From NCBI GenBank assembly GCA_002269645.1, contig NIVC01002544.1, positions 1-64,000 on the forward strand: 64,000 nt of DNA, written 5' to 3'. The notes under the pieces were generated by a model that did not search any database, had not been told where the DNA came from, and was given only the letters and a program-made list of their open reading frames with translations. This DNA comes from Macrostomum lignano. Its lineage: Eukaryota. Below, one piece after another: positions 6,590 through 47,711 of the stretch; the first letter of the stretch is position 1; every line of letters starts with the position of its first letter. Made by a program: the position numbers and the translations under genes.

Positions 6590-9500
6590 ACACACTGACG
6601 GAACCGCTGTCGCTGCCGCAGAGGCCGCAAGGTGCTGGAGACCCGCTCCATCGCTGACGAGGAGCGCGTCAACACACTGGAGGAGCAGCTCAAGGAGGCG
6701 AAGTTCATCGCAGAGGACGCGGACCGCAAATATGATGAGGCAGCCAGGAAGCTGGCCATCACCGAGGTGGACCTCGAGCGGGCCGAGTCCCGCCTGGAGG
6801 CGGCTGAAAGGTGCCCTTGGCATGCCCTGCGTGTCCCATTGAAGTGTTTTCAGTTTTTTTTTATGACTGCATTTAAATCTTCGTCCTGTTGTGAATGTTT
6901 TTGTCCAGAGACCTGTTCCAGGATATTTTGAGTTCTCAAAAACAAATTAGAGAATTTATAATAACTATTTACTAATTGCCCGTCTTGCTTGTATTTTCAT
7001 GCTCGATTTCTATTTATGAACTGCAGATTTAAACTGTTATGATCCCAGTGCGAATATAAATCCTAAACTGACACTTGTGATCCCGATTTGAAAGTTAAAA
7101 TCCCAACCTGGCGGCTGAAATCCTAATGTGACAACAATTATCCCAACCTGTCAGCTAAAATCCCAACCTGTCAGCTAAAATCCCAATCTGACAGCTAAAA
7201 TCCAAACGTGGCGGCTAAAATCCCAATCTGACAGCTAAAATCCCAATCTGACAGCTAAAATCCCAACCTGGCGGCTAAAATCCCAATCTGACAGCTAAAA
7301 TCCCAATCTGACAGCTAAAATCCCAATCTGACAGCTAAAATCCCAACCTGGCGGCTAAAATCCCAATCTGACAGCTAAAATCCCAATCTGACAGCTAAAA
7401 TCCCAATCTGACAGCTAAAATCCCAACCTGGCGGCTAAAATCCCAATCTGACAACTAAAATCCCAGTATGAAGTCAGAAACGTTTTTTAAAGTTTTTCGA
7501 AATGCTTTTCGAGTTTTTTGGCATTAACGTTTTTTAAACAAGAGTCTTGCTTTTGCTTGTCGGGAATTGCTGTGTTTTTTAGAGAGCTAGAAGATAGAAC
7601 TAAGTAGAAGCATGAAGCTGTTCGGGTGCCAAGAACTATAGTGCCAGTGAATTTGAGTTGGTTTAAAAATTGTAATTATTAGGAGTGTAATCCTTATTCT
7701 AGCGTTATCCTCTAACTCCGGCTTAGATGGGAGTTTTACTTCCCAGTACTGGCACATAAATAGTTTTAAATATAGCTGGCAGGGTATATATTTATTTGTT
7801 GTTACTAACCGCCTACCTGGGGGCCATGTCGTCATCAGGTCAACCGGAAGCTGCTTCTGACCGAAGCCCAGCTGGACAGGGCGGAACAGAGGGCCGAGGC
7901 CGCTGAGCGCAAAGTCAAGGATCTGTCGGACGAGCTGCACTCTGTCGCTAACAGTCTAAAATCGCTTGAGCAGAGGGATGCCAAGGTTCTTAGTTTACCT
8001 TTTTGGTTATTTTTAAGCGCCCATCATATTCATTATTCACGTTAACGATTCGATTATTTTATAATTTTATGTTTTTAACGCCATAAAGAATTTATGGAGG
8101 TTTAGTCAGTATTCACTACTCACAAGTAGCTAATTATTGTACAATAGGAAAAGTCTGTGTTTGCACGCTTGCGCATGGCATGGTTCAAGCGAATAAATTA
8201 ATCTGTCTATTTGTATGAACAATTACTATAAAGTTGCAATTGAAATCAACGATAAAGAAACTGTGCACTGAAAATGCAGCAAAATCCTGGAACTGGAAGA
8301 GGAGCTGCGCGTTGTTGGCAGCAACATGAAATCGTTGGAGATCTCCGAGCAGGAGGCGGCCCAGCGCGAGGAGTCTTACGAGGAAACTATCCGAGATCTC
8401 TCCGAGCGTCTCAAGGCTGTAAGGGCTTAGATTGAATTGGATTTGCAATTAGATTGCAGTATGCCATAGTTGAACTACAATAAAAAGATAAGTCAATTAG
8501 TTCAAAGCATTTTAAATTAATATTGGAGGAAATTAACGGTGTGTCTAGACTGTAAAATGTGCTGGAGGGGCAGGTGTGAGTACGTAGAAAAGTTTAGCGG
8601 GCTCTGGCTCTTATCTAGATTGACTAGCTAGAACGGGGTGGGTGTTGGAGGGGTAGGAAAGTTTAGCGGGCTCTGGCTCTTATCTAGATTGACTAGCTAG
8701 AACGGGGTGGGTGTCGGAGGGGTAGGAAAGTTTAGCGGGCTCTGGCTCTTATCTAGATTGACTAGCTAGAACGGGGTGGGTGTCGGAGGGGTAGGAAAGT
8801 TTAGCGGGCTCTGGCTCTTATCTAGATTGACTAGCTAGAATGGGGTGGGTGTCAGGGGGGGGTAGAAAAGTTTAGAGGGCTCCTGCTTTTATCTCGGTTG
8901 ACTAAGCTAGAATGGGGTGGGTGTCGGAGGGGTAGGAAAGTTTAGCTGGCTGGCTGAATTTTTTATATTGGCAGGCTAGAGTGAGTGGTTTAGCTAGAGT
9001 GGCTCTGGATTGAGGTGGGTGTCGAACGGGTTAGGTTCTAGATTATAGTTTATGCTACAAGGAGGCGATTTCGCTCAGTAATACGAAACTTATGTCGCAT
9101 ATTTTCATAGCCGCCAAAGCAGTCGTAAGCAAAACCAGTATTTTAGAAGAAACAGTCTCCAAAGCCTCGTCGTGTCGTTCTTCGTCGACTTGCATCGCAT
9201 ATTACTGTAATTAACACACCGAGTGCCGTGCCCTCTTGTATAATTTGCAAAAATCCAAGCATTGCTTCTTTGAAACTTGAAGACCAAAGTTCAGTTCAGT
9301 TTGAACTATGCCTGCGTTTTATGCGTTCACTTAGGGGGGGAGGGGTATTGAGTAAGAGTAGTTTGAAGCATGGCGTTTTTCATTACTTTATATTTACAAA
9401 CTTTATGATTTTCATTATGATTTTTTGTAATTGTTAACATCTTTTAAATATTGTAATCTCTTGTGCATGCCAGTTTGCTGTTCAGACATTCTGGTGACTG

Positions 9501-12500
9501 ACTCCATCCCTACCAACCAATCTTCAAACCAGCTCCATCTCCTATTCTCCATTCTCTCTAGTCTCTACCCCATCCCTCTTGCCGCATCATTTCTATCTTA
9601 GTCTGCATGCCCTTGATCGCGAACAGTCGCCCATTAGTTCAACTAACTGCCTGCCCATCTTTGCAGTCTGCATCCAGAGAGGAGTCGTACGAGACTCAGA
9701 TTAAGAGCCTGACCCGCCGGCTTGCCGAGGTAAATATTAATTTATATCTCCGTGAAATACTTGTTTTAACTGGGCCGCATGCTTTGTTCTGAGTCCAGAT
9801 TAGTGCACGAGTATGCTTGCTGTGACTGTTGCTCCTGTTGCTCCTGCTTGCCCAACAATTTTTTTAACCTAATAACATGTGACGACACGACTGGCTGAAG
9901 TTGAGGAAGCAACGGTGGAGTAGCGGCCAAATCGAATTTGGTTTTTCAATGGGAGTTTCGCTGGATCGCCTCTTTTATATTTGCTTCTAAAAATGATAGT
10001 GTTATTCAATTCACTCTACTAAGAAGAGTAGTTCTATTCCAATTTAAAGCTTTACCTGGTTTTTTTTAAATACAGAGATAAATATGACTTTAGGTAGGCT
10101 GTTAAATTGCGTGCATTCTGTCCAGCAGCTCCCAAACTGCATCGCAAACAGTCACCCATAGATGGATCAAGAATTGCCCATTGACAGATCTAGAATCACC
10201 CATAGATAGATCAAGAATTATCCATAGAAAGCTTAAGAATTACGCTCAGACAAAATCAGAATCACCCATAGGCAGATTGAGAATCACCCATAGGCAGATT
10301 CATGCTTGGGCGCAACCTTTGGATTCACTCGGCCGTTTCTATTGGCAACACACACGTATGTCGCTATTGGACAGAATAGTAGTCACGTGACTGCTCTCAG
10401 CCAATAGCGACTTACATGTGTGTGTTGCCAATAGAAACGGCCGGGTGATTCCCAAGGTTGCGCATGTATGGGCAGATTGAAAGTCACCCATAGGCAGATT
10501 GAGTCACCCATAGGCAGATTGAGAGTCACCCATAGACAGCTATTGAGAATCACCTATAGGTAGATTGAGAATCGCCCATAGACAGCTATTGAGAATCACC
10601 CATAGACAGATTGAGAATCACCCATAGACAGATTGAGAATCACCCATAGACAGCTATTGAGAATCACCCATAGACAGCTATTGAGAATCACCTATAGGCA
10701 GATTGAGAATCACCCATAGACAGCTATTGAGAATCACCCATAGACAGCTATTGAGAATCACCCATAGACAGCTATTGAGAATCACCCATAGACAGCTATT
10801 GAGAATCACCCATAGACAGCTATTGAGAATCACCCATAGACAGCTATTGAGAATCACCCATAGACAGCTATTGAGAATCACCCATAGACAGCTATTGAGA
10901 ATCACCCATAGACAGCTATTGAGAATCACCCATAGACAGCTATTGAGAATCACTCATAGACAGCTATTGAGAATCACTCATAGACAGCTATTGAGAATCA
11001 CCCATAGACAGCTATTGAGAATCACCCATAGACAGCTATTGAGAATCACCCATAGACAGCTATTGAGAATCACCTATAGGCAGATTGAGAATCACCCATA
11101 GACAGCTATTGAGAATCACCCATAGACAGCTATTGAGAATCACCCATAGACAGCTATTGAGAATCACTCATAGACAGCTATTGAGAATCACCCATAGACA
11201 GCTATTGAGAATCACCCATAGACAGCTATTGAGAATCACCTATAGGCAGATTGAGAATCACCCATAGACAGCTATTGAGAATCACCCATAGACAGCTATT
11301 GAGAATCACCTATAGGCAGATTGAGAATCACCCATAGACAGCTATTGAGAATCACCCATAGGCAGATTGAGAGTCACCCATAGACAGCTATATTATCTTA
11401 GGACACGAATAATTTAACAAGTATGCACTTTGGGATGTTGCTAAGGCAAAATACACGCAATTCGAGCAGACAGTAAGTACATTGAATTCTCTGACTAAAT
11501 CCGGACACAATCGTCACCCCCGATCGTGAGCTCAGGCTGAGCAGCGCGCTCAGGAGGCCGAGAGGCAGGTGTCCAAGCTGCAAAGCGAAGTGGACAGGCT
11601 GGAGGGTATGTTACAGTATCTGTCATTGCTCACTGCGGTGCGGCCTCTCCGCTATGAGCATCGGCCGAGAAACGAACCGGACCTTTTGCCGCGGATGTTC
11701 TATTGCTCTGATTTTGTCAGCCCCAAATCTGTTTGCCTGTCCGTGTCTTGTCTGCCGTGTGGTTTTCAGTTCAGTTTGACGTGACCAGAACAAAGCATGC
11801 CGGCTATTAACAGAGTTTAGCAATAGCGCATGTGAATTTTATGAATAAGTTCTCGCTTTTTGTAAGGCTGAGGACCGAGCTGAGAAAGCGGAGCGCGAGT
11901 CTGTTAAGCACCAGAAGGAGCTCGACAAGGCTGAGGGTGAGCAACTGCTTATTGATTCTCAGTTTGTGTTTGCAGTAGGGATGATGGAGTACAAGTGAGA
12001 TGCAAGGGAGAGATTTGAGATTCAGTTGTAGAAGAAGGCACAGTGTAGAAGGGGGGCACATAGGGGAGAAGGGGGTCACAGAGGGGAGAAGGGGGACACA
12101 GAGGAGAAGGGAGACAGGGGGAGAAGGAGGCACAGACAGGAGAAGGGGACACAGACAGGAGAAGGGAGACAGACAGGAGAAGGAGGCACAGACAGGAGAA
12201 GGGGGACACAGACAGGAGAAGGGAGACAGACAGGAGAAGGGGACACAGACAGGAGAAGGGGACACAGACCGAGTGGCGTCAACGTTTCCCCCATTCGCTC
12301 CGCAGAGCGCCTCCTGGAGGAGAAGCAGCGCAACGCCAGCCTCAAGCAGGAGATGGACAGCATGCTTGGCGAGTTCCAGAAGATCTAAAAGAGAATGGGA
12401 GACCCAGAGAGCTCCGTAGCAATAGAATGAGTTTACTGTTACAGAACACTGAAACCGTGGACCCAGCTGCTTGGGCACCCAAGTTTATTTATATATTTAT

Positions 12501-13870
12501 TAACATTGCACGGGTTTTCGTTAGTTTGCTGTTGTTGCACGGCCTGTTGCAACCGAGTTTGAACTTTTGGTCTGCTCGAGCTTCGCTGATACGGCGCTTA
12601 GCAACAGAGTGTGTTTTCCTTAGTTACGGATTGTTTCTTTACGGTCTCTCCGAGGCAGTCAGTTTTAATTATTCCAACCCAATCAATACGCGCTTGTTTT
12701 GCTACTAATAATAGCTTTGGCAGTAGTGTATTTGGAGTTGTTTATTAATAAAATTTCTGATTGCATAGCTTCTGCCTTCTGCCTTTTTTGTCTACTAAAA
12801 CTGCCTGGTGTTTATGCTGTTAGCCCGTGCTACCAATACTATCCAATTTAATTACCTTAGCCATCTATTTAATGCCAGATAGATCAAGTGAGCGCTTTTT
12901 CTCTTGCAACTAGAATTCTTGCTAGTCTAAAAAACTGCACTGATTAATTTTTTTTCAATGAATGAATATAAAAATAGCAACGTACTCATCTTACTACTGT
13001 CGCCGGTCTGTTCGAGTAGAGTTCAGTTCGGAAGCTTGCCCCACCCACTTTAGATCCGCTAAGCTTCATCAGCCAGCTTTTTGTTATAAATTAGCGTTAT
13101 TATAGTCTATGCTATAGTTATTATTATTTGAATCAAATATAGTTATAGACAATTTCGCAGTTTCTATCGCTTTTCGCTACTGTCAGTAGCGGTTAGGAAA
13201 TATTTTAATTTTAGGAAAATCAAGAACGGCCAGCTGCACGCTCTGTTTGTATTCCTGCGTATTAATATTATTATTATTATTATTACTACTTATAACCTTT
13301 CCGCGTTACTAACTGTTTATAATAAATAAACAATTTCAAATATTAAAAATATTGTCAATCTGCAATCTGCTTGTTTTTCAACAGTGAAAGGAGTTTGGCA
13401 TGCTGAAAATGTTTGTGTTTGTCTCCCTGCCGTTCAGTGACTTTGCTTTGTTCTGCATGCCGCCTTTGACAGCGTGGCCTGCATGTTTTTACACAGTTTT
13501 TTGGCTTTCCCTGGGCTGGCAAATCCGGTTCGTTTCAATGTAAAGTTACAAGGAGTGTCACAAATGCAGAAGTATACTGCTGTAACATTATGTACAGTCA
13601 TTAGAAATTCACATATCTATTTTGGCTAGGCATGTACATTGCTTTGAAAATGTACAGTGCTGTATGGACAAATCTATATTCAGTGGGTTAGAAAAGTACA
13701 TTGTGGTCACAAAAGTACACAGTAAGTGCACTCGTAAGTGCACTGACAGTAGCAGCATGGGATTTCAATTCGTTGACAAATCCGCAGACGAGCTGCTTTC
13801 GGAGAAGGACCGCTACAAAGGCATCAGCGAGGAGCTGGACCAGACCTTCGCCGAGCTCACTGGCTATTAA
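435..13870 (+). CDS. TPM: Tropomyosin, long (muscle-type) isoform, 284 aa, 7 exons
   Basis: Exons 435-500 (or 435-496), 589-762, 5352-5485, 6622-6810, 8280-8418, 11536-11605, 13788-13870; 855 nt, GT-AG, phases match. MDAIKKKM...[17 protein letters not shown]...[18 protein letters not shown]...[12 protein letters not shown] is the lophotrochozoan tropomyosin pattern. Confidence 0.95.
589..762 (+). CDS. TPM: Tropomyosin exon 2a
   Basis: [14 protein letters not shown]...EKRASD, then GTAAGT. Confidence 0.9.
2675..2815 (+). CDS. TPM: Tropomyosin alternative first coding exon 1b
   Basis: [31 protein letters not shown]...NLRTQ, phase-0 GT at 2816. Confidence 0.85.
2675..12388 (+). CDS. TPM: Tropomyosin, short (non-muscle-type) isoform, 251 aa, 7 exons
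   Basis: Exons 2675-2815, 5352-5485, 5691-5808, 7839-7985, 9667-9729, 11867-11936, 12306-12388; 756 nt, GT-AG, phases match; each exon is paralogous to a muscle-track segment. Confidence 0.85.
3109..3513. mobile_element. Degenerate MITE with CAGTGGC-type ends
   Basis: Left TAGTGGCAAAGCTAGGA, right CCCTGGCTCACTACTG; possible TSD AACAGATA / CATAGATA. Confidence 0.35.
4055..4430. repeat. Diverged ~145-bp tandem repeat, about 2.5-3 copies
   Basis: CATAGTCACCT recurs near 4060, 4201, 4352; CCCACTGTCAAG recurs. Confidence 0.6.
5352..5485 (+). CDS. TPM: Tropomyosin shared exon 3
   Basis: [19 protein letters not shown]...[10 protein letters not shown], then GTGAG. Confidence 0.95.
5691..5808 (+). 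CDS. TPM: Tropomyosin short-track exon (residue block 4)
   Basis: [26 protein letters not shown]...RYEE, 118 nt. Confidence 0.85.
6194..6589. repeat. (GACA)n microsatellite
   Basis: Intronic, upstream of tropomyosin exon 6622. Confidence 0.95.
6622..6810 (+). CDS. TPM: Tropomyosin muscle-track exon (blocks 4+5 fused)
   Basis: [15 protein letters not shown]...[21 protein letters not shown], 189 nt. Confidence 0.95.
7097..7465. repeat. 20-bp minisatellite
   Basis: Unit CTAAAATCCCAATCTGACAG. Confidence 0.9.
7839..7985 (+). CDS. TPM: Tropomyosin short-track exon (blocks 5+6 fused)
   Basis: [20 protein letters not shown]...[12 protein letters not shown], 147 nt. Confidence 0.85.
8280..8418 (+). 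CDS. TPM: Tropomyosin muscle-track exon (blocks 6+7 fused)
   Basis: [26 protein letters not shown]...SERLKA, 139 nt. Confidence 0.95.
8586..8945. repeat. 69-bp minisatellite, ~5 copies
   Basis: AGTTTAGC at 8591, 8660, 8729... Confidence 0.9.
9667..9729 (+). CDS. TPM: Tropomyosin short-track exon (block 7)
   Basis: [21 protein letters not shown], 63 nt, AG/GT flanks. Confidence 0.85.
10310..10463. mobile_element. 154-bp palindromic (foldback) element
   Basis: Arms GCGCAACC..TTTCTATTGGCAACACACAC..GTCGCTATTGG and its reverse complement around a central AGTCACGTGACT. Confidence 0.75.
10480..11390. repeat. 24-bp minisatellite
   Basis: Unit GAGAATCACCCATAGACAGCTATT; degenerate copies also at 10180-10300. 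Confidence 0.95.
11536..11605 (+). CDS. TPM: Tropomyosin exon 8, muscle-type copy
   Basis: [23 protein letters not shown], 70 nt. Confidence 0.9.
11867..11936 (+). CDS. TPM: Tropomyosin exon 8, alternative copy
   Basis: [23 protein letters not shown], 70 nt, same phases as 11536-11605. Confidence 0.85.
12050..12270. repeat. Degenerate purine-rich minisatellite
   Basis: GACACAGACAGGAGAAGGG-like units. Confidence 0.75.
12306..12388 (+). CDS. TPM: Tropomyosin short-isoform last exon
   Basis: [26 protein letters not shown]; AATAAA at 12747-12752. Confidence 0.85.
13788..13870 (+). CDS. TPM: Tropomyosin muscle last exon
   Basis: [26 protein letters not shown]. Confidence 0.95.
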
Positions 13871-15357: not shown

Positions 15358-15674
15358 TAACTAATCCTTTGTCTCGTCAGATTTCTCGTAGCAAATCTTT
15401 CCAAACGTATATATAGTGAGTGCTGCTCTGTGCTCGCGTACTTAAGAGTGCATTTCTAAAAAATGTGTCACTAGAAAGCATCGCACAATTGTTTTGTTTA
15501 TTAAAAGACAGGCATACGATATGTCTATGGCCTCAAAGGCAGAGCGAAATTTCAGCAATTCTCTACCAGGGTCTGCGCAGCAGTTCTGCGTTGCTCATTG
15601 ATTCTGCTGTTAGGAGAAACAGCATAAGTCGGCCAAGTTTGCTTGAGCTAACAGAAGATTGGAACAACAAGGAA

Positions 15675-18600
15675 ATGTCCTTCAACGAGAATGTAAGTTT
15701 ACATTTGTTCCTGTCATGAAGAGTCAGCAAAACGTACAAGCATTGCCCATCGTTCCCTGATCTGTAATACAAAAACGGGAGACATGCTTAGGGTAGTTCA
15801 GGCAAAATCAGCCAATTAAGATAAGACAAACCATATAGCTCGTATACTCGTTTTGTTCTGTTCGCCCAGGCCCGGCCATTCCTGACTCTCCACGTGGGTC
15901 AGGCTGGAGTACAGATCGGCAACGCGATTTGGGAGCTGCTCTGTCTTGAGCACAATGTTCAAAAAAGCGGCCTAGCCAAGCCCGACTGCCCTAGCAACGG
16001 TTTCTATGACGCAATGTTTCTACGCAATCAGAACGGCCATTTCATGCCCAGGTCGATCTTTTTAGATACGGATCCAACGTGTATTGGTAAGCATACGCTT
16101 TATAGGTTAGCTGCTTCTGTCTCTCCTTCATCGTTGAAACTCTAATTTGGAAGCGGCCAATCCGAATCGAAGAAGTAGTTTGCGGAGTGAGGTGGGTGTC
16201 AACAGGGCAGACAGACCAGTTAAAAGGCAGCCAATCAGAATCGGAGGGGTAGCTTGCGGAGTGAGGTGGGTGTCAACAGGGCAGACAGACCAGTTAAAAG
16301 GCAGCCAATCAGAATCGGAGGGGTAGCTTGCGGAGTGAGGTGGGTGTCAACAGGGCAGACAGACCAGTTAAAAAACAGCCAATTAGAATTTGAGTAACGG
16401 ATTTTGATGTCTTGATTAGTCTGAACTGTTTTTCCGCAGACGAGATTCGAGTCGGGCCCTACAGGGAGTTGTTCAGCACCCGGCAGCTGCTCAGCGACAG
16501 CGCGGACTCTGGGTTCAACTACATGCGCGGCCGGCGCGACTTCCGCCGCAACCTCCTGCCGGAAGCAGTTGAAAGGTTTCGCTGGCTCTCTGAGAAGTCG
16601 GATGTGACGCCGACCGCATTTCTTGTTCACAGCACCGGCGGCGGCACTGGCAGCGGCCTGTCGGTGTCCTACCTGGAGGAGCTAAGGTCCGAGTTCGATT
16701 CCCGTCTGCAGGTACTTGAGCTGAGCGTCAGCTCGGGCAACAGCGGCCTGCAGAGCACCTGCGAACTTGTCAACTCGATGCTATACTCATACGAGTCTAA
16801 GGACTACACTTCGTTGTCCTTCTCCGTCACCAACTCGGCCATGTTCAATTTGTGCAGGTCCGGCCTCAGCCTGTACGGTGGCGCCACCTTTGCCCATCTG
16901 AATCGCATGCTCGCCATGTGCTTCAGCAACCTGACCGTGATGGAGAGATTTCCAGGCACCATGATGTGCAACATTGCCAACATTTGCAGCAATGTACTGC
17001 CGTTTAAGTAAGTACTGCGACAGTCACTTGACAAATAGATAATTCAGGATGGCTTTTCAGGATAGTCAGAATGGTCAATATGGGTCAGGACTGTCAAGAT
17101 GGTCAGGATGGGATGGTCAGGATGGTTTGGATGGTCAGTGTTAGTCAGAATGGTCAGGATGGTCAGGATGGGATGGTCAGGATGGTCAGGATGGTCAGGA
17201 TGGTCAGGACGGTCAGGATGGTCAGGATAGTCAGAATGGTCAATATGGGTCAGGACTGTCAAGATGGTCAGGATGGTCAGGATGGTCAGGATAGTCAAGA
17301 TGGTCAGGATGGTCAGGATAGTCAAGATGGTCAGGATGGTCAGGATGGTCAGGATAGTCAAGATGGTCAGGATAGTCAGGATGGTTAGGACGGTCAGGAT
17401 GGTCAGGATGGTCAGGATGTTCAGGATGTTCAGGATGGTCAGGATGTTCAGGATGGTCAGGATGGTCAGGATAGTCAAGATGGTCAGGATGGTCAGGATG
17501 GTCAGGATGGTCAGGATGGTCAGGATGGTCAGGATGGTCAGGATGGTCAGGATGGTCAGGATGGTCAGGATAGTCAAGATGGTCAGGATGGTCAGGATGG
17601 TCAGGATAGTCAGGATGGTCAGGATGGTCAGGATGGTCAGGATGGTCAGGATGTTCAGGATGGTCAGGACGGTCAGGATGGTCAGGATGGTCAGGATGTT
17701 CAGGATGTTCAGGATGGTCAGGATGTTCAGGATGGTCAGGATGGTCAGGATAGTCAAGATGGTCAGGATGGTCAGGATGGTCAGGATGGTCAGGATGGTC
17801 AGGATGGTCAGGATGGTCAGGATAGTCAAGATGGTCAGGATGGTCAGGATGGTCAGGATAGTCAAGATGGTCAGGATGGTCAGGATGGTCAGGATGGTCA
17901 GGATGGTCAGGATGGTCAGGATGGTCAGGATGTTCAGGATGGTCAGGATGGTCAGGATGGTCAGGATGGTCAGGATGGTCAGGATGTTCAGGATGGTCAG
18001 GATGGTCAGGATGGTCAGGATGGTCAGGATGGTCAGGATGTTCAGGATGGTCAGGATGTTTAGGATGGTCAGGATGGTCAGGATGGTCAGGATGGTCAGG
18101 ATGGTCAGGATGGTCAGGATAGTCAAGATGGTCAGGATGGTCAGGATGGTCAGGATGGTCAGGATGGTCAGGATGGTCAGGATGGTCAGGATGGTCAGGA
18201 TGGTCAGGATGGTCAGGATGGTCAGGATGGTCAGGATGGTCAGGATGTTCAGGATGGTCAGGATGGTCAGGATGGTCAGGATGGTCAGGATAGTCAAGAT
18301 GGTCAGGATGGTCAGGATGGTCAGGATAGTCAAGATGGTCAGGATGGTCAGGATGGTCAGGATGGTCAGGATGGTCAGGATGGTCAGGATGGTCAGGATG
18401 GTCAGGATGGTCAGGATGGTCAGGATGTTCAGGATGGTCAGGATGGTCAGGATGTTCAGGATGGTCAGGATGGTCAGGATGGTCAGGATGGTCAGGAATG
18501 TCAGGACAGTCATCAGTTTCAGGATCAAATGGTATTCCGAGGCTTCCCAACCAACCCGCAGGCAGCTGAAGCACCCCATCGTGGCCTGCGCGCCGTTTAC

Positions 18601-20320
18601 TGCAGCCTCGGCAGTCGGCAAGGAGCGCTCGAGCGCCATCGGCATCACTTCGGCTTTGATGGAGCCCGATGGTCAGCTAGCGGATGTGGACCTGCGCCAG
18701 GGCAAGCACATGGCCGGGGCGCTCATCTACCGAGGCGCGGCCAAGACAGCCGACATCGAGCAGGCGCTGCTGTCGCTGCGCGAGCGCGGCCGAGTTCAGT
18801 TCGTTGACTGGGCGCCGTCCAGCTTCAAGACCGGCCTGTCCGAGCTGCCGCCGCTAGCCGTACCGGACAGCGGCATCGCCGGGCTGCCCCTGTCGGTGAC
18901 GCTGGTCAGCAATCACTCGGCCGTGGCATCCCTTTTCCGCGGCCAATCGACCGCAGTCAGGAAGCTGGTCGAAGCCGGCAGCTGCTTCCTGCGCAGCTAC
19001 GAGACGAGCGCCGCCAATGGTTCCGAGGCCGGTGGCGGGTTTGAAGACAGCGGCTCTTCGCAATCGGCTGGTCACAACGTCGGCGGCCGCGGTGGCAACA
19101 TCGTCGGCCTGCTCAAGGAGGCCTCCGACCATTTGGAGGGCCTGGCGCAGGTGTACAGCAGCGAGCTTCCGCCGACCCCCACTGGCCAGCAGGCGAACAG
19201 CGAAGACTCCGGCGGTCCCAAGCGGATCGTGGCGTCACCAATGTCGAGGGCGACAGCCGCCAAGCCGCGCCGGGCCTCGCTGGGTCGGGAGGCGCTGTTC
19301 CCCATCGGGCCAAGTCGATCCGGCCGAGTGCAAGCGGACGAGGAGTCAGCAACCCCGGGCAAAGTCGCCTCTGTGCAGCAGCACTCAAAGGGAAGCGGCA
19401 CCGACGAACGATTCGGTCCTTCGCAGACGCAGGAACTGGACTCGCCGGGCAAAGTCGCCTCTGTGCAGCAACAGTCAACGGGAAGCGGCACCGACGAACG
19501 ATTCGGACCATCGCAGATGCAGGAACTGGACTCGCCGGGCGAAGAGGCAGTGGGCTCTTCAGAAATGAAGCCAGAAAGCCAGTACTCGCCGGTTGCTATG
19601 CAACCGTCACAGGAGTACGGTGCGACAGCGTTCAGCGAAAAAGAGACACTGACAATTGAGAGATCCGATGTGTCCGACAATATGCCGGAGGGAGCGGCGT
19701 CGCCGCAAGATAGCGCGGTCACGCAAGGCCAGCCGGTGACGCTCACGCACACTCAATCATTTTCCACGCCGACCGCTGACAGCGAAGGCGCCACTCCGCT
19801 GGCCAGCGCTCCGCGGCAGGATTATAACGAATTTATATCGAGGCGGCAGCAGAAGCGGGGCGGCGGCGGTGGCGGCGGCGGCGGCTGCTGCCGAAAGCGC
19901 AATAAACAGCCGTCGAAACGGTCCGCCGCCCATCAACGGTCGCGGTCGCAGAATCACGCCAACTCGTGGGGTGCCAAATCCAGCAGGTTCTTCCTGTACA
20001 GCGACAGCAGTAGCAGCCAAGACGACATGCTGGTTGGCACCAGGGACGGCTATTCGTATCTGACCTATCATTCGAGTGCCACTCACAGTTTCAGCTTCCT
20101 GCCCGCAAACGTGGTCAACTCTCAGGTCGAGAGCGACGCGAAATCCGAGCTTGACGAGGCCCTCGACTACGAGTCTGTTGGGTCGAGTGGCGCAGCTACG
20201 GATAGCGCAACTGATCTGGACGAGATCATACGCGACTGCGTGCCCGGACCAATGCCTGTTCTGACCAGCGTCAAGAGAATGGTGCAAAAGTACAATGAGA
20301 TGTTTGCGAAAGAAGGCTGA
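15675..20320 (+). CDS. Highly divergent alpha-tubulin-like protein with long C-terminal extension (~853 aa, 4 exons)
   Basis: Exons 15675-15692 (tentative), 15870-16086, 16440-17007, 18562-20320; 2562 nt. HVGQAGVQIGNAIWELLCLEH, GGGTGSG, LNR and QFVDWAPSSFKTG align with alpha-tubulin along the whole fold. Confidence 0.9.
15870..16086 (+). CDS. Alpha-tubulin-like exon 2
   Basis: LHVGQAGVQIGNAIWELLCLEH...PRSIFLDTDPTCI. Confidence 0.92.
16182..16375. repeat. 74-bp tandem repeat, ~2.6 copies
   Basis: GCGGAGTGAGG at 16182, 16256, 16330 (tubulin intron 2). Confidence 0.9.
16440..17007 (+). CDS. Alpha-tubulin-like exon 3
   Basis: DEIRVGPYRELF...HSTGGGTGSG...NVLPF, then GTAAGT. Confidence 0.92.
17046..18510. 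repeat. 9-bp minisatellite (GGTCAGGAT)n
   Basis: Fills tubulin intron 3. Confidence 0.97.
18562..20320 (+). CDS. Alpha-tubulin-like exon 4 (C-terminal fold plus disordered tail)
   Basis: QLKHPIVACAP...GKHMAGALIYRG...QFVDWAP, then a 384-aa tail. Confidence 0.9.
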
Positions 20321-21226
20321 TTTAAAAAAATAACATGATGCTATGCCATCTCTCGTCATAAAGGGTTAAAACCGCTGTATTTTATGAATTTAAGTTTAAA
20401 ATAAATTGATTTAATTTTCGCCGCTTTTAGCACTGTGTTGGCCACTTGCTTAGCCGCCCAGTTGCGGCCGCGGTGCAATTAATTTATTTAAAATCCACAT
20501 AAAAACTATAGCCCCAATATTAATTTAAACGCACAATGCATGTGCCTGAGGACCTGAATCCGCCCTGTATATGAAAAAATCGTCCGCAAAAACGAAGAAG
20601 GATTCGTCCGCAATTTATGTATTGTAGATCTATAGAGTCTATAGTTCATATATCAAGGAGCTGGATCTTTATCAGACAAAATTCTAAAAGATATTCTCTC
20701 AAATGTCGATTACTTTACGTCTACATATGGAGTCTGCACACCGAATAGGATAGGCCTATTTTCATGTATTCACTCAAAAGACAATTCCAAACCGAGATTT
20801 TCTGCCGTAACTTTATTCGAATAAGAAAAATATAGTACTTATTATTTACCGATTTGTACTTTTTTAAAAGAATATTTATAGGTAAAATGTACTATTTATT
20901 ATTCATGTTTTGCTGATATTGCAATATACCTTTCGTTTTTGTTAACATTTAAGTAAGTTTACAGTAAAAATTTAACACTGTAAAAGTTTTCATTTTTTGC
21001 AATGAACCTCAGCTCAGCTTTGTCGTTACTCGTTAAGGTTGTAGCTTTTGAATAAGGTCCATCCCAGTACCCTTATTACTGTCAGACCTGTGCTAAGTAA
21101 AATAAGGTTTGCAAAAATACGTTTCTAGGAATTCTAAATTACTAATTAGTAGGATGTTTAAAAAATAACTTGATTATATTCATATATGCTTGCTTAGATT
21201 ATACTATAAATCATAGTAACATAGGT

Positions 21227-23385: not shown

Positions 23386-23694
23386 ATGTCGGCAGCAGAC
23401 GATGACGCATTCAACAGGCTGGCTAGCGACATTGCTAGACAGGTGGACAGCATTAAGAGCAATGCCAATCAGATCAAATCTCTGGCCTTATCTATTGGCA
23501 CTGAGCGGGACTCGTCAGACAGGCGGCAGCAGCTGCACTCGCTGACCCACACCACTAGGGCGCTGTGCCAGGCCGCCGCTGATCAGCTGCGCGACGGCCT
23601 GGCGCCAATGTGCGTCGGGCTGGCTGGCGGCGCCAGGCGCGCGCAGAAGGACCGCCTGTTGGACAAGCTGGCTAAGGCGGCAGGCGACTTTCAG
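23386..23694 (+). CDS. STX7/12: Syntaxin exon 1
   Basis: MSAADDDAFNRL...AGDFQ, then GTATG. Confidence 0.88.
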
Positions 23695-25543
23695 GTATGC
23701 CTAGTGGGGTGGATAGAATGGTCGGGGGCGGTTGATAGGTCGGTGAGTAGGGTGGCGGATAGAGTCGGTGAGTAGGGTGGCGGGTAGTGTCTGGTATAGT
23801 CCGGTGAATAGTGTCTTGTAGAGTCGGTGAGTAGAGTATCTGGTAGAGTCGGTGAGTAGAGGATCTTGTAGAGTCGGTGAGTAGAGTATCTGGTAGAGTC
23901 GGTGAGTAGAGTGTCTGGTAGCGTCCGGTGAGTAGTGTCTTGTAGAGTCGGTGAGTAGAGTATCTAGTAGAGTCGGTGAGTAGAGGATCTTGTAGAGTCG
24001 GTGAGTAGAGTATCTGGTAGAGTCGGTGAGTAGAGTGGCGGGTAGAGTCAGTAAGTAGGGCGTCTGTTAGAGTCAGTGAGTAAAGTGTATGGTAGAGTCG
24101 GTTAGTAGAGTGTCTGGTAGCGTCCGGTGAGTAGTGTGTCTTGTAGAGTCGGTGAGTAGAGTATCTGGTAGAGTCAGTGAGTAGAGCGTCTGGTAGAGTC
24201 AGTGAGTAGAGCGTCTGTTAGAGTCAGTGAGTAAAGTGTATGGTAGAGTCGGTTAGTAGAGTGTCTGGTAGAGTTCGGTGAGTGAGATAGCGGGTAGAGT
24301 CAGTGAGTAGGCATGTCGTTGAGCATTCAGTCTCTTCCGGCCCCATCCAGGAGGCGCAGCGGCTTGTCCAGTCGCGCGAACGCGAGCAAGTCGGCCAGCA
24401 GAAGCGCGCAGCCAGCGGTGTGGAGGCGGCCTTCAACAGCGATGCGCAGCCGCCCCCGCCCAGCGGTGCCGAAGACAACTCCAACCCGTTCACGCTGGAG
24501 AACGCGCAGATGCAGGCGACCGCGGATCTGCAAGACGATTTGCAGGCCGCCGAGGAGCGTGAGAGCCAGCTGCGGCAGCTGGAGCAGGACATTGTGGGTG
24601 AGCTTGCGGGACTGGGTTGTCAGGCCGTTAATTCCCAGCTATCCTAATGCGGGTAATCGATTTTATTGTAATATCCACACCCCTTCCGTCATCTCAATTT
24701 CTCTATCCATCACCGAGTAAATACATTTACAGCCTAATAACTTCAGTAGAGTGTTAGCCTACTGACTTCAGCAAAATCAGCACAATTCTCCATTCACACT
24801 ACTCCCAAATTCAGCCCACTCCCACTCTACCATTCACCCCACTCCACCATTCACCCCACTCCACCATTCACCTCACTCCACCATTCACCCTACTCCAATA
24901 TTCACCCCACTCCACCATTCACCTCACTCCACCATTCACCTCACTCCACCATTCACCCTACTCCAATATTCACCCCGCTCCACCATTCACCCCACCCCAC
25001 TCCACCATTCACCCTACTACAATATTCACCTCACTCCACCATTCACCCTACTCCACCATTCACCTCACTCCACCATTCACCTCACTCCACCATTCACCCT
25101 ACTCCAATATTCACCCCACTCCACCATTCACCTCACTCCACCATTCACCCCACTCCACCATTCACCTCACTTCACCATTCACCCACTCCACCATTCACCT
25201 CAGTCCCCACTCCACCATTAACCTCACTCCACTATTCACCTACTCTCTATTCACTCACTCCCCCATTGACACCACTACCCTGTTCACCCCAACCGCAGGC
25301 ATCAACGAGATGTTCAAGGACCTGGCTCAGATGGTGCACGAGCAGGGCGACATGGTCGATTCGATCGAAGACCACGTCGGACAGGCGGTCATGCAGGTGG
25401 ACGAGGGCAACAAGAACCTGAAGCAGGCGGTCACCTATCAGAAGTCTGCTAGGCGCAAGAAGATCATCATTGCGCTGGTGGTGATTGTTGCGCTCGCTAT
25501 CCTGGCCGTGATCATCTATTTTGCCGTGCCCAAGCCTAACTAG
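23386..25543 (+). CDS. STX7/12: Syntaxin-7/12-like endosomal Qa-SNARE, 266 aa, 3 exons
   Basis: Exons 23386-23694, 24351-24597, 25299-25543. Habc domain (IGTERDS..RQQLH), SNARE motif EERE..[33 protein letters not shown], C-terminal TM helix. Confidence 0.92.
23730..24310. repeat. ~25-bp minisatellite carrying GTGAGT
   Basis: GTAGAGTCGGTGAGTAGAGTATCTG-like units, syntaxin intron 1. Confidence 0.9.
24351..24597 (+). CDS. STX7/12: Syntaxin exon 2
   Basis: EAQRLVQSRE...LRQLEQDIV, then GTGAG. Confidence 0.9.
24825..25260. repeat. ~18-bp C/A-rich minisatellite
   Basis: CACTCCACCATTCACC units, syntaxin intron 2. Confidence 0.9.
25299..25543 (+). CDS. STX7/12: Syntaxin exon 3
   Basis: [16 protein letters not shown]...IIYFAVPKPN*. 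Confidence 0.93.
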
Positions 25544-40103: not shown

Positions 40104-41578
40104 GTATGTTCGGGGCCTGATCAGAGTGAACTGCTATTCTCACGCACTGTTCACGCAGAGTGAACTGCTATTTTCACGCACCGTTCACACAGAGTGAACT
40201 GCTATTCTCGCACTGTTCACACAGAGTGAACTGCTTTTCTCGCACACTGTTCACACATATTCAACTGCTATTCTCACACACTGTTCACACAGAGTGAACA
40301 TTCTCACGCACTGTTCACACAGAGTGAACTGCTATTTTCACGCACCGTTCACACAGAGTGAACTGCTATTCTCGCACTGTTCACACAGAGTGAACTGCTT
40401 TTCTCGCACACTGTTCACACATATTCAACTGCTATTCTCACACACTGTTCACACAGAGTGAACATTCTCACGCACTGTTCACACAGAGTGAACTGCTATT
40501 CTCGCACACTGTTCACACAGAGTGAACTGCTATTCTCGCACTGTTCACACAGAGTGAACTGCTTTTCTCGCACACTGTTCACACATATTCAACTGCTATT
40601 CTCACACACTGTTCACACAGAGTGAACATTCTCACGCACTGTTCACACAGAGTGAACTGCTATTCTCGCACACTGTTCACACAGAGTGAACTGCTATTCT
40701 CACACACTGTTCACGCAGAGTGAACTGCTATTCTCACAACACTGTTCACACAGAGTAAACTGCTATTTTCACGCACCGTTCACACAGAGTGAACTGCTTT
40801 TCTCGCACACTGTTCACACAGAGTGAACTGCTTTTCTCGCACACTGTTCACACAGAGTGAACTGCTTTTCTCGCACACTGTTCACACAGAGTGAACTGCT
40901 ATTCTCGCACACTGTTCACACAGAGTGAACTGCTATTCTCGCACACTGTTCACGCAGAGTGAACTGCTATTCTCGCACACTGTTCACGCAGAGTGAACTG
41001 CTATTCTCGCACACTGTTCACGCAGAGTGAACTGCTATTCTCGCACACTGTTCACGCAGAGTGAACTGCTATTCTCGCACACTGTTCACGCAGAGTGAAC
41101 TGCTATTCTCGCACACTGTTCACGCAGAGTGAACTGCTATTCTCGCACACTGTTCACGCAGAGTGAACTGCTATTCTCGCACACTGTTCACGCAGAGTGA
41201 ACTGCTATTCTCGCACACTGTTCACGCAGAGTGAACTGCTATTCTCGCACACTGTTCACGCAGAGTGAACTGCTATTCTCGCACACTGTTCACGCAGAGT
41301 GAACTGCTATTCTCACACACTGTTCACACAGATTGAACTGCTGTTCTCACACACTGTTCACAGAGTGAACTGCTGTTCTCACGAGCCACCCACTCATTCA
41401 CCGCCAGGTGCTGAAAATGATGGTCGGCAACAATCTGAAGGACACTCAGTTGCAGCAGATTGTTGACAAAACCATCATCTTTGCTGACAAAGACGGGGAC
41501 GGCAGAATCTCCTATGAGGAGTTCTGCGACTTGGTCGGCGGTCTGGACGTTCACAAAAAGATGGTGGTAGATGTCTGA
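39768..41578 (+). CDS. PPP3R1: Calcineurin subunit B (protein phosphatase 3 regulatory subunit), 168 aa, 2 exons
   Basis: Exons 39768-40103, 41408-41578. [18 protein letters not shown]...[15 protein letters not shown]...[23 protein letters not shown]...KKMVVDV; four EF hands. Confidence 0.97.
40120..41385. repeat. 34-bp minisatellite filling the calcineurin B intron
   Basis: CGCAGAGTGAACTGCTATTCTCGCACACTGTTCA units. Confidence 0.95.
41408..41578 (+). CDS. PPP3R1: Calcineurin B exon 2
   Basis: [12 protein letters not shown]...MVVDV*. Confidence 0.96.
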
Positions 41579-45776: not shown

Positions 45777-46204
45777 TACCGCTATTTCTATTTTATTTAC
45801 CATTCTTGATTTGCATCAGAAAAAGCTGATTTTCAGATTATTTAGTATTTGCATTACTAAAAGTAGTCAGCCAGAAGCAGTAGCAGAATAACTTGAAATT
45901 AAACAGAAATGAATACTTGCTGTATTAATAGTTGTCAGCCATATGCCTGTATTTCAATGCTGTATTCAATAGAGCAAAATTTGATAATTTCTAAACATTT
46001 GCAATACTGAGTGAGCAGACAGTGCCAGTACTGGAAAGCATAATAATAATGCTTGTCATAGAATACAGCTCAGCCGTGACTATCCGGTCAGTAAAATTTC
46101 TAATCCTTCTTTTCTTACAGGTGCAGCACAAGAGGTAGGCAGGAAAAGGCGAGGTTTATCATGAGATAAGAATGAAGAAATGACTAAGATTAATCATAGC
46201 GATT

Positions 46205-47520
46205 AGACATAGGAACAATGAGATTCATGATGAGATTAGAGATGGGATCAATGGGATTCATGGTGAGATTAGAGATGGAATCAATGAGATTCATGATGAG
46301 ATTAGAGATGGAATCAATGAGATTCATGATGAGATTAGAGATGGAATCAATGAGATTCATGATGAGATTAGAGATGGAATCAATGAGATTCATGATGAGA
46401 TTAGAGATGGAATCAATGAGATTCATGATGAGATTAGAGATGGAATCAATGAGATTCATGATGAGATTAGAGATGGAATCAATGGGATTCATGATGAGAT
46501 TAGAGATGGGATCAATGAGATTCATGATGAGATTAGAGATGGAATCAATGAGATTCATGATGAGATTAGAGATGGGATCAATGAGATTCATGGTGAGATT
46601 AGAGGTGGAATCAATGAGGTTCATGGTGAGATTAGAGATGGAATCAATGAGATTCATGATGAGATTAGAGATGGAATCAATGGGATTCATGGTGAGATTA
46701 GAGATGGAATCAATGAGATTCATGATGAGATTAGAGATGGAATCAATGAGATTCATGATGAGATTAGAGATGGAATCAATGAGATTCATGATGAGATTAG
46801 AGATGGAATCAATGAGATTCATGATGAGATTAGAGATGGAATCAATGAGATTCATGATGAGATTAGAGATGGAATCAATGAGATTCATGATGAGATTAGA
46901 GATGGAATCAATGAGATTCATGATGAGATTAGAGATGGAATCAATGGGATTCATGATGAGATTAGAGATGGAATCAATGGGATTCATGATGAGATTAGAG
47001 ATGGGATCAATGAGATTCATGATGAGATTAGAGATGGAATCAATGAGATTCATGATGAGATTAGAGATGGGATCAATGAGATTCATGGTGAGATTAGAGG
47101 TGGAATCAATGAGGTTCATGGTGAGATTAGAGATGGAATCAATGAGATTCATGATGAGATTAGAGATGGAATCAATGGGATTCATGGTGAGATTAGAGAT
47201 GGAATCAATGAGATTCATGATGAGATTAGAGATGGAATCAATGGGATTCATGGTGAGATTAGAGATAGGATCAATGAGATTCATGATGAGATTAGAGATG
47301 GCATCAATGGGATTCATGGTGAGATTAGAGATGGAATCAATGAGATTCATGATGAGATTAGGGATGGGACCAATGAGATTCATAATGAGATTGGAGATGG
47401 GAACAATGAGATTAATAGTGAGATTAGAGATGGGATCAATGAGGTTCATGATGAGATTAGAGATGGGATCAATGAGGTTCATGATGAGATTAGACATGGG
47501 AACAAATAGATTCATGGTGA
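46205..47520. repeat. 33-bp minisatellite
   Basis: ATGGAATCAATGAGATTCATGATGAGATTAGAG units. Confidence 0.95.
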
Positions 47521-47711
47521 GATTTGCGATGAGAGCTATGTTAGGATTGATTGCAGTGTTATGAAGTTTGAAGTTTAACTTTAACATGTTAACGATGTCA
47601 GGAATTGATTTGATTTCGAAGACAAGAGACCCATGAAATTGACATTAATGTCAGGCATGAACAAATGAATGGCACAGATGAACTTCTGCAGTTGCATTTG
47701 GTGCGCCCTGA

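Follow-up and report, generated by a model that had tools for sequence, protein, structure and literature searches.

Glutamate 254 of alpha-tubulin is the switch behind dynamic instability and has hitherto mostly been studied through engineered mutants; together with D251 it makes up the GTPase-activating (GAP) residues of the protein (PMC10056924). In human alpha-tubulin, the substitutions E254A, E254N and E254Q abolish GTP hydrolysis and give stable, catastrophe-free microtubules with an expanded lattice (PMC7018511, PMC8764682, PMC11893814). The closest described natural system is the coccidian alpha3-tubulin (T. gondii TGME49_231400, with counterparts in Hammondia, Neospora, Besnoitia and Cystoisospora), whose GAP activity has been proposed to be weakened or missing, with a use in non-dynamic microtubules that might be those of microgametes (PMC10056924). 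Here we describe BOX15_Mlig018576g1 (hereafter Mlig018576) of the flatworm Macrostomum lignano (assembly Mlig_3_7), located in positions 1–64,000 of contig NIVC01002544.1, a stretch of 64,000 nucleotides referred to below as the window. An earlier note, made from the letters of this stretch alone, had read the gene as an alpha-tubulin derivative lacking the GAP residues, and its account of E254 substitutions, E254N included, as slowing or stopping hydrolysis and stabilizing microtubules is correct (PMC8764682).

Like Mlig018576, coccidian alpha3-tubulin is alpha-derived and has lost D251 and E254, which are replaced by T and Q/H in the coccidian protein and by N at both positions in Mlig018576. 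In each, moreover, the N-terminal MRE(C/I) regulatory motif is altered, the M and H1-S2 loops are not conserved and the C-terminal tail is exceptionally long (PMC10056924). The two differ in the length of that tail, about 40–48 residues in coccidian alpha3 and about 385 in Mlig018576, and in their identity to canonical alpha-tubulin, 39% for T. gondii alpha3 and 32% for Mlig018576 in the same alignment. Furthermore, T. gondii alpha3 has a glutamate one position off (PMC10056924), whereas Mlig018576 is without any acidic residue in the T7 loop and helix H8. In a neighbour-joining (NJ) tree with 200 bootstraps, T. gondii alpha3 (P0201, T/H) formed no supported grouping with the Macrostomum clade, and the resemblance looks like convergence from an independent origin. 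The engineered human mutants are otherwise wild-type and polymerize normally. Mlig018576 carries the same E254N substitution, but its family has 153 of 229 alpha-invariant positions changed, and as these changes affect most polymer-contact elements, the behavior of the E254 mutants is not simply transferable. The gene itself is annotated and has served as a marker of the testis, and coccidian alpha3 is a published precedent for the concept; we found neither the loss of catalytic residues in this family nor its paralogue pair nor the selection on its tail described in the literature.

T7/H8 residues, nucleotide pocket and alpha-tubulin affiliation

Residues were assigned in the numbering of vertebrate-type alpha-tubulin using a 223-sequence MAFFT alignment. 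The 20-residue T7/H8 stretch of Mlig018576, RFPGTMMCNIANICSNVLPF, has the same length as its canonical counterpart and aligns without gaps between conserved anchors, bearing out the substitutions N249M, D251N and E254N that the earlier note had listed. E247 and E289 are the sole acidic residues of aa 241–295, and thus no acidic residue lies near 254 under any alignment; a displaced residue taking over that position is thereby ruled out. In the same alignment, D251 was found in 128 of 128 canonical alpha-tubulins and E254 in 125 of 128, and the T7/H8 losses are therefore not due to chance. With zero acidic residues in T7/H8, the protein is unable to supply the catalytic pair D251/E254, which in alpha-tubulin enters the exchangeable GTP site of the underlying beta-tubulin. 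The residues concerned are located as follows.

15900–15902, plus strand: Q17, corresponding to alpha Q11, in exon 2
16514–16516, plus strand: F104 at alpha position N101, T3 loop, a gamma-phosphate contact
16637–16657, plus strand: T4 tubulin signature GGGTGSG, intact
16949–16993, plus strand: T7 loop and helix H8, FPGTMMCNIANICSN, aa 249–263, zero acidic residues
16964–16966, plus strand: M254, corresponding to alpha N249 (N249M)
16970–16972, plus strand: N256, corresponding to alpha D251 (D251N)
16979–16981, plus strand: N259, corresponding to alpha E254 (E254N)

Around the nucleotide, Q11, GGGTGSG, N206 and N228 are unchanged, as had been read before, and the replacement of N101 by phenylalanine was likewise confirmed (F104), with E71D and Y224F (conservative) as further alterations. 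The statement that the GTP pocket is retained holds for the contacts from T1, T4, T6 and H7; T3 is changed at N101, and T5 is only 13% identical to canonical alpha-tubulin. The supposed loss of the K40 acetylation site (SDK to PDC) follows only if the variable loop is aligned ungapped, and this loop is three residues shorter here.

Pfam domains were matched by both halves of the fold, Tubulin (PF00091) at aa 11–217 with 103 bits and Tubulin_C (PF03953) at aa 271–394 with 85 bits. When the protein was compared to known sequences, the best 60 PDB chains (E about 1e-77) and the best 120 matches among 5.8 billion proteins were all alpha-tubulins, and in single-sequence phmmer searches the median score was 266 bits against 106 canonical alphas and 160 bits against 9 betas. 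An exhaustive HMMER scan of 1.84 billion cluster representatives, using a profile of Mlig018576 and its M. lignano paralogue Mlig033756, ranked the two Macrostomum clusters at 881 and 857 bits, followed by alphas at ~300 and betas at ~190 bits; the exceptions were two gene models that scored 508 and 422 bits through several matched stretches. The alpha-specific 8-residue S9-S10 insertion is present (AVPDSGIA, compared to VVPGGDLA in canonical alpha), where beta-tubulins show an 8-column gap. Over 439 trimmed columns, Mlig018576 is 30–33% identical to canonical alphas and 23–25% to beta-tubulin, compared to 38–41% between alpha and beta; it thus falls short of the mutual identity of canonical alphas, which is well over 60%.

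This low identity, lying within the between-class range, could be taken to mean that the gene is not alpha-derived and belongs to one of the other ancient tubulin classes (gamma, delta, epsilon, zeta) or to the long-tailed neodermatan clade described below. In the exhaustive profile scan, which stands in for a tree with references of these four classes, canonical alphas rank directly behind the Macrostomum clusters, well above beta. Together with the S9-S10 insertion and a neodermatan clade (84% bootstrap) that leaves out the Macrostomum proteins, this makes such an origin scarcely credible. Mlig018576 and Mlig033756 formed a clade with 100% bootstrap and no supported sister; a Cimex protein considered as sister group was rejected, as it reached only 20% bootstrap. 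No orthologue was found outside M. lignano in the collections searched, which appear to contain no other Macrostomum species. The designation as an alpha-tubulin derivative was thus upheld by all searches, and by these comparisons Mlig018576 is a lineage-specific, extremely divergent alpha-tubulin offshoot.

The divergence is unevenly distributed. Identity to canonical alpha is highest in T1/H1 (83–90%), S4 plus T4 (57%), H2-S3 (55%) and the H10-S9 loop plus S9 (47%), and lowest in H11 (5%), H8 (12%), T5 (13%), H10 (15%), H11' (16%), H3 (19%), T7 (25%) and the M-loop (29%); H12 is also remodelled. Of 229 positions conserved to at least 90% in 48 alphas, the two paralogues both keep 76, share a family-specific change at 37 and differ from each other at 116, so that 153, about two thirds, are changed in one or both paralogue groups. 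The nucleotide core is best preserved, with 12 of 15 alpha-invariant positions kept in T1/H1 and 8 of 10 in S4 plus T4. Canonical alpha and Mlig018576 thus have in common the fold, the Pfam domains, T1 GQAG, T4 GGGTGSG, N206, N228, the S9-S10 insertion and the block QFVDW.P..FK.G; the H10-S9 loop and S9 (RVQFVDWAPSSFKTGL) are well kept. In contrast, Mlig018576 lacks the GAP residues, the MREC start (now MSFNENARPF), the HWYVGEGMEEGEF motif, the acidic H12 surface and the acidic tail with its terminal tyrosine, and differs by N101F and a remodelled T5. MREC is the motif recognized in tubulin autoregulation. With 30–33% identity, remodelled contact elements and the loss of MREC and the acidic tail, the protein is not a simple natural E254N mutant, and the picture of an alpha-tubulin with a few point changes appears too simple.

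Structure prediction was run separately for the tubulin domain (aa 1–478) and the tail. The AlphaFold2 model of the domain reached a mean predicted local distance difference test score (pLDDT) of 79.8 and a predicted template modelling score (pTM) of 0.83, with helix H8 at aa 257–264 and N259 in its first turn. The best Foldseek matches in the PDB were tubulin structures, with template modelling (TM) scores of 0.80–0.86 when normalized to the model and 0.86–0.94 when normalized to the chain. The tail (aa 469–853, ~385 residues) is of low complexity and rich in S, T, G and Q, contains a Gly9 run and a basic patch, ends in KYNEMFAKEG and gave no Pfam match; its DNA includes two 90-bp repeats (19355–19544). 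It is predicted to be disordered except for a terminal helix in the last ~20 residues, in a single-sequence prediction of low confidence.

Gene structure, selection and expression in the testes

In the window, Mlig018576 comprises four exons on the plus strand (coding region 15675–20320), with 853 codons ending in TGA and three introns that are all GT-AG.

15549–15692, plus strand: exon 1, with 5' untranslated region at least from 15549 (GenBank model start), ATG at 15675–15677 (MSFNEN), coding part 15675–15692 and GT donor at 15693
15870–16086, plus strand: exon 2, 217 nt, encoding S1, the T1 loop GQAG, H1, a shortened H1-S2 loop and T2 (DTDP)
16087–16439, plus strand: intron 2, containing a 74-bp x 3.2 tandem repeat (16156–16389)
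16440–17007, plus strand: exon 3, T3 to H8; its junction LPFK/QLKH is confirmed by the RNA-derived protein P0001
17008–18561, plus strand: intron 3, GT..AG, nearly all microsatellite, (TCAGGATGG) x 162 at 17057–18506, unit 9 bp
18562–20320, plus strand: exon 4, whole
18562–19162, plus strand: exon 4, first part, S7 to H12; it holds two insertions, the alpha-type one of S9-S10 (AVPDSGIA) and one of ~27 residues that separates H11' from H12
19163–20320, plus strand: exon 4, second part, C-terminal extension aa 469–853, stop TGA at 20318–20320
19382–19391, plus strand: 10 nt omitted by the GenBank coding sequence of BOX15_Mlig018576g1, shifting the frame; that model ends at 19568
19901–20452, plus strand: in situ probe region (published primers, 'TUBA4A', testes), end of the coding sequence and 3' untranslated region

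No further in-frame ATG occurs upstream within exon 1 (15549–15692). The GenBank model, which derives from a genome-guided RNA-seq assembly according to the genome paper, reproduces all three splice junctions, in line with the intact frame of about 853 codons and the clean splice sites claimed previously. The span then given to the gene, 15870–19165, ends roughly where the tubulin fold ends (aa 468, position 19162) but misses exon 1 and the 385-residue tail. The microsatellite of intron 3 gives rise to spurious long open reading frames (ORFs) on both strands; the intron measures 1554 bp in the window and about 2476 bp in the copy g4 (L003 9161–11636), the length of the array differing greatly.

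The GenBank coding sequences of g1 and g4 both omit 10 nt, leave the frame and stop early; the public proteins count 641 and 599 residues. Beyond the GenBank stop at 19568, the ratio of non-synonymous to synonymous substitution rates (dN/dS) in the long frame is 0.14 (p = 1e-5), third codon positions account for 13 of its 20 differences, and the UniProt model A0A1I8HZ98 shares the C-terminal end of the 853-residue model. As the long frame is moreover intact in three genomic copies, the 853-residue model was taken as correct, and the public protein models appear to be truncated by the 10-nt skip.

These three copies are the window, the nearly identical L002 (intact 853-aa ORF) and L003 (g4), a duplicate of about 97% identity with the same syntaxin neighbor, an in-frame 9-nt deletion and an intact 850-aa ORF; the genome paper notes large-scale redundancy of the assembly. 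Between the duplicated copies g1 (window) and g4, dN/dS by the Nei-Gojobori method was 0.195 (32.5 synonymous and 20.5 non-synonymous differences, binomial p = 2e-8), with 0.18 for the tubulin domain and 0.205 for the tail. Mlig018576, including its tail, is thus kept under purifying selection. A fourth copy, L006 (g2), carries nine indels of 1–2 nt, mostly in short homopolymer runs of a PacBio contig, and otherwise only four substitutions over three exon alignments, so that its indels are probably assembly errors. L006, the frame-shifted GenBank coding sequence and the extreme divergence with many conserved motifs lost are what a transcribed duplicate decaying towards a pseudogene might present. 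Set against them are the ORFs of 853 and 850 residues intact in three copies, the likely assembly origin of the L006 indels, dN/dS values of 0.1–0.2 with a strong third-position excess in both paralogue groups, and strong, tissue-specific expression, and decay, now largely refuted, is given very little probability. The view of the earlier note that the gene is not a pseudogene agrees with its retained introns, its intact copies, a dN/dS of 0.18–0.20 rather than near 1, and the in situ signal in testes.

Expression in the testes, at first a guess, could be linked to published data. Grudniewska et al. 2016 (eLife 5:e20607, Figure 3-source data 1) list an in situ probe named 'TUBA4A' with the pattern 'testes', the primers of which match the window exactly at 19901–19920 and 20433–20452, and match the other copies too. 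The germline-enriched clusters of this probe include RNA1509_1373 (2858 nt, human TUBA4A e = 5e-67); the transcript cluster has a log fold change of +5.1 in adults compared to juveniles and -6.2 after gonad removal (Grudniewska et al. 2016). The spliced model 15549–20452 (2820 nt, GC content 0.589) fits this transcript in length and GC content (0.586). On the strength of the exact primers and this fit, Mlig018576 corresponds to the published testis-expressed transcript; it is transcribed, its splicing follows the model, and in situ hybridization shows it in the testes. The words 'tubulin' and 'TUBA4A' do not occur in the main text of that study, and the positional RNA-seq supplements contain no entry for 'tubulin'. 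Neither were the identifiers Mlig018576 and Mlig033756 found in full texts or in the supplements of the genome and Macrostomum molecular-evolution papers, nor germline beta-like tubulins (TUBB names) in the parts of the supplementary tables that were covered.

Related and convergent tubulins, and the flanking sequence

The paralogue group Mlig033756 (P0002; loci L004 and L005), which encodes a second alpha-like tubulin lacking the GAP residues, is 45% identical to Mlig018576 in the tubulin domain and shares its first two intron positions, exon 2 measuring 217 nt in both genes. Its T7/H8 sequence is RLPGSSVGLSGILDSLLPF, in which E254 is lost, and its signature motif reads CGGTGSG; family-specific motifs common to the two groups are found in T2, T5, H3 and H7. 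Mlig033756 has a 320-aa, Q/E-rich tail, and its copies, with a dN/dS of 0.106, are under purifying selection. Similarity between the C-terminal ends of the two tails was considered and dropped (BLASTP E = 2, no Pfam match). The germline transcript RNA1509_1057 (2575 nt, GC content 0.605) is compatible with Mlig033756, from which it may derive. The gene (L004 8001–10955; L005 8001–11027) adjoins a phosphodiesterase gene.

Long-tailed alpha-like tubulins also occur in parasitic flatworms of the same phylum (Paragonimus, Calicophoron daubneyi and Mesocestoides corti; P0162, P0165, P0168, P0169, P0170, P0173, P0177, P0276), with low-complexity tails of 180–660 residues, and no published description of them was found. 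Unlike Mlig018576, their clade (84% bootstrap) keeps E254, and the Macrostomum proteins fall outside it. In this clade, T7 contains an insertion. D251N and E254A occur together in a separate protein of Paragonimus westermani, P0170. In the gene model of a 638-residue Schistocephalus solidus protein (P0022), a canonical alpha is joined to the beginning of a second, divergent alpha-like tubulin (HIGGAGVQVGSQFWDIF...), which suggests tandem divergent copies in cestodes. A sample of 75 divergent alpha-like representatives contained 18 in which position 254 is not acidic and nine in which this holds for both 251 and 254; only Mlig018576 and one other protein are without any acidic residue in T7/H8. 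Loss of the GAP residues in divergent alpha-like tubulins is thus recurrent and apparently convergent, with Mlig018576 as an extreme case.

Two further comparisons are functional analogies. Position 254 of beta-tubulin is a lysine in the 223-sequence alignment; K254 is non-catalytic and faces the GTP of alpha-tubulin, which is never hydrolysed. Gamma-tubulin, a roughly 33%-identical relative, contacts one protofilament end only. Mlig018576 is alpha-like by sequence and indel pattern and is not specifically related to either.

In the window, the gene is flanked upstream by a plus-strand gene at about 7549–13870 with a 248–284-aa product and no Pfam domain, and downstream, at about 23398–25543 on the plus strand, by a syntaxin/SNARE gene that is syntenic in copy L003. 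ORF fragments on the minus strand at 49367–50488 and 52735–53226, with CUB-domain matches of 24 and 34 bits, are probably exons of a CUB-domain gene. The window (1–64000) contains more than 40 minisatellite arrays with periods of 9–151 bp, many exceeding 1 kb (e.g. 10476–11391, 40122–41380, 46201–47531 and 59859–60798), and most of the long ORFs in a mechanically made list are due to these arrays. According to the genome paper, simple and tandem repeats make up 15% of the genome.

Candidate roles of Mlig018576 in spermiogenesis

The sperm of Macrostomum are aflagellate and carry stiff bristles. We propose that Mlig018576 may be a GTP-binding, non-catalytic structural or capping tubulin of these sperm, a mechanism which, taken as a whole, we regard as evenly balanced between right and wrong. 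During spermiogenesis, the protein would bind GTP as a structural, non-hydrolysed cofactor, associate with a beta-type partner through its nucleotide-bearing face, and take part in tubulin assemblies of a non-dynamic kind in the aflagellate, bristle-bearing sperm. Whatever longitudinal contact it made through the T7 face would be hydrolysis-dead; such a contact would keep the interface locked in its GTP state or else, as the T7 face is so diverged, end the protofilament as a minus-end cap, while the tail could project outward like a built-in microtubule-associated protein (MAP). Capping or non-canonical assembly seems at least as likely as ordinary co-polymerization. Of the three options raised in the earlier note, a GTP-cap mimic, a capping tubulin or a non-polymerizing one, incorporation into the lattice as a GTP-cap mimic would be the least secure, because the longitudinal, lateral and motor/MAP contact elements are remodelled.

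Several observations weigh against the proposal. T5 (13%) and H11' (16%) are strongly changed compared to canonical alpha and presumably lie on the beta-binding face of the heterodimer, which makes pairing with ordinary beta-tubulin doubtful. The lateral contacts H3 and M-loop are remodelled as well. Between the paralogues, only 4 of 29 positions are identical in T7, H8 and H10 taken together, compared to 44% overall (binomial p = 0.0006, all positions), but a minus-end face specifically released from constraint is a trend only, as Fisher's test on the alpha-invariant positions gave p = 0.11. Furthermore, the in situ probe is unable to separate the near-identical gene copies, and the RNA interference (RNAi) column for 'TUBA4A' is blank in the screen of Grudniewska et al. 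2016.

A serious rival, to which we assign roughly half the weight given to the structural or capping tubulin, is that Mlig018576 encodes a non-polymerizing tubulin-fold protein, soluble or scaffold-bound in spermatids, which sequesters or chaperones a partner (beta-tubulin, a cofactor or a TTLL-type enzyme) or acts mainly via its tail, the GTP-bound domain serving as a stable binding module. Nearly all polymer-contact elements are remodelled, few alpha-invariant positions are left in H11, H11' and H12, selection acts on the tail, and at 31–33% identity the protein is as distant from alpha as are the non-lattice tubulins. A mere scaffold would, however, have no need of the conserved H10-S9 loop and S9, the S9-S10 insertion and the nucleotide core, and a sequestered partner has no positive support. 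An unlikely third reading has Mlig018576 pair with Mlig033756 and build a hydrolysis-free filament of its own, apart from the alpha/beta microtubules. The 100%-bootstrap clade without supported sister, the purifying selection on several copies of both groups, their long tails and the shared motifs in T2, T5, H3 and H7 would fit such a pair, whereas both groups are alpha-like with an alpha-type insertion, a beta-like T7 and a catalytic residue are absent from both, and the link of Mlig033756 to the testis consists of the compatible transcript RNA1509_1057 only. In a related and equally improbable version, the two groups would together constitute a GTPase-dead tubulin system private to Macrostomum, whose polymer, either hybrid or distinct from microtubules, would build one of the rigid sperm structures (bristles, shaft or feeler), with the disordered tails as spacers or cross-linkers.

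Apart from correcting a public gene model in which a 10-nt skip cuts the GenBank coding sequence, the analysis of Mlig018576 describes an animal that has retained, for long and under selection, a testis-expressed, alpha-derived tubulin with the E254 switch removed. M. lignano is transparent, and RNAi and transgenesis are available in this species; the effect of a hydrolysis-incompetent tubulin in a living cell would therefore be directly testable in its spermatids, where stiff structures other than axonemes are built. Along with coccidian alpha3 and several unnamed database proteins, Mlig018576 suggests that the loss of the GAP residues combined with the gain of a long tail is a recurrent, convergent route to specialized tubulins.

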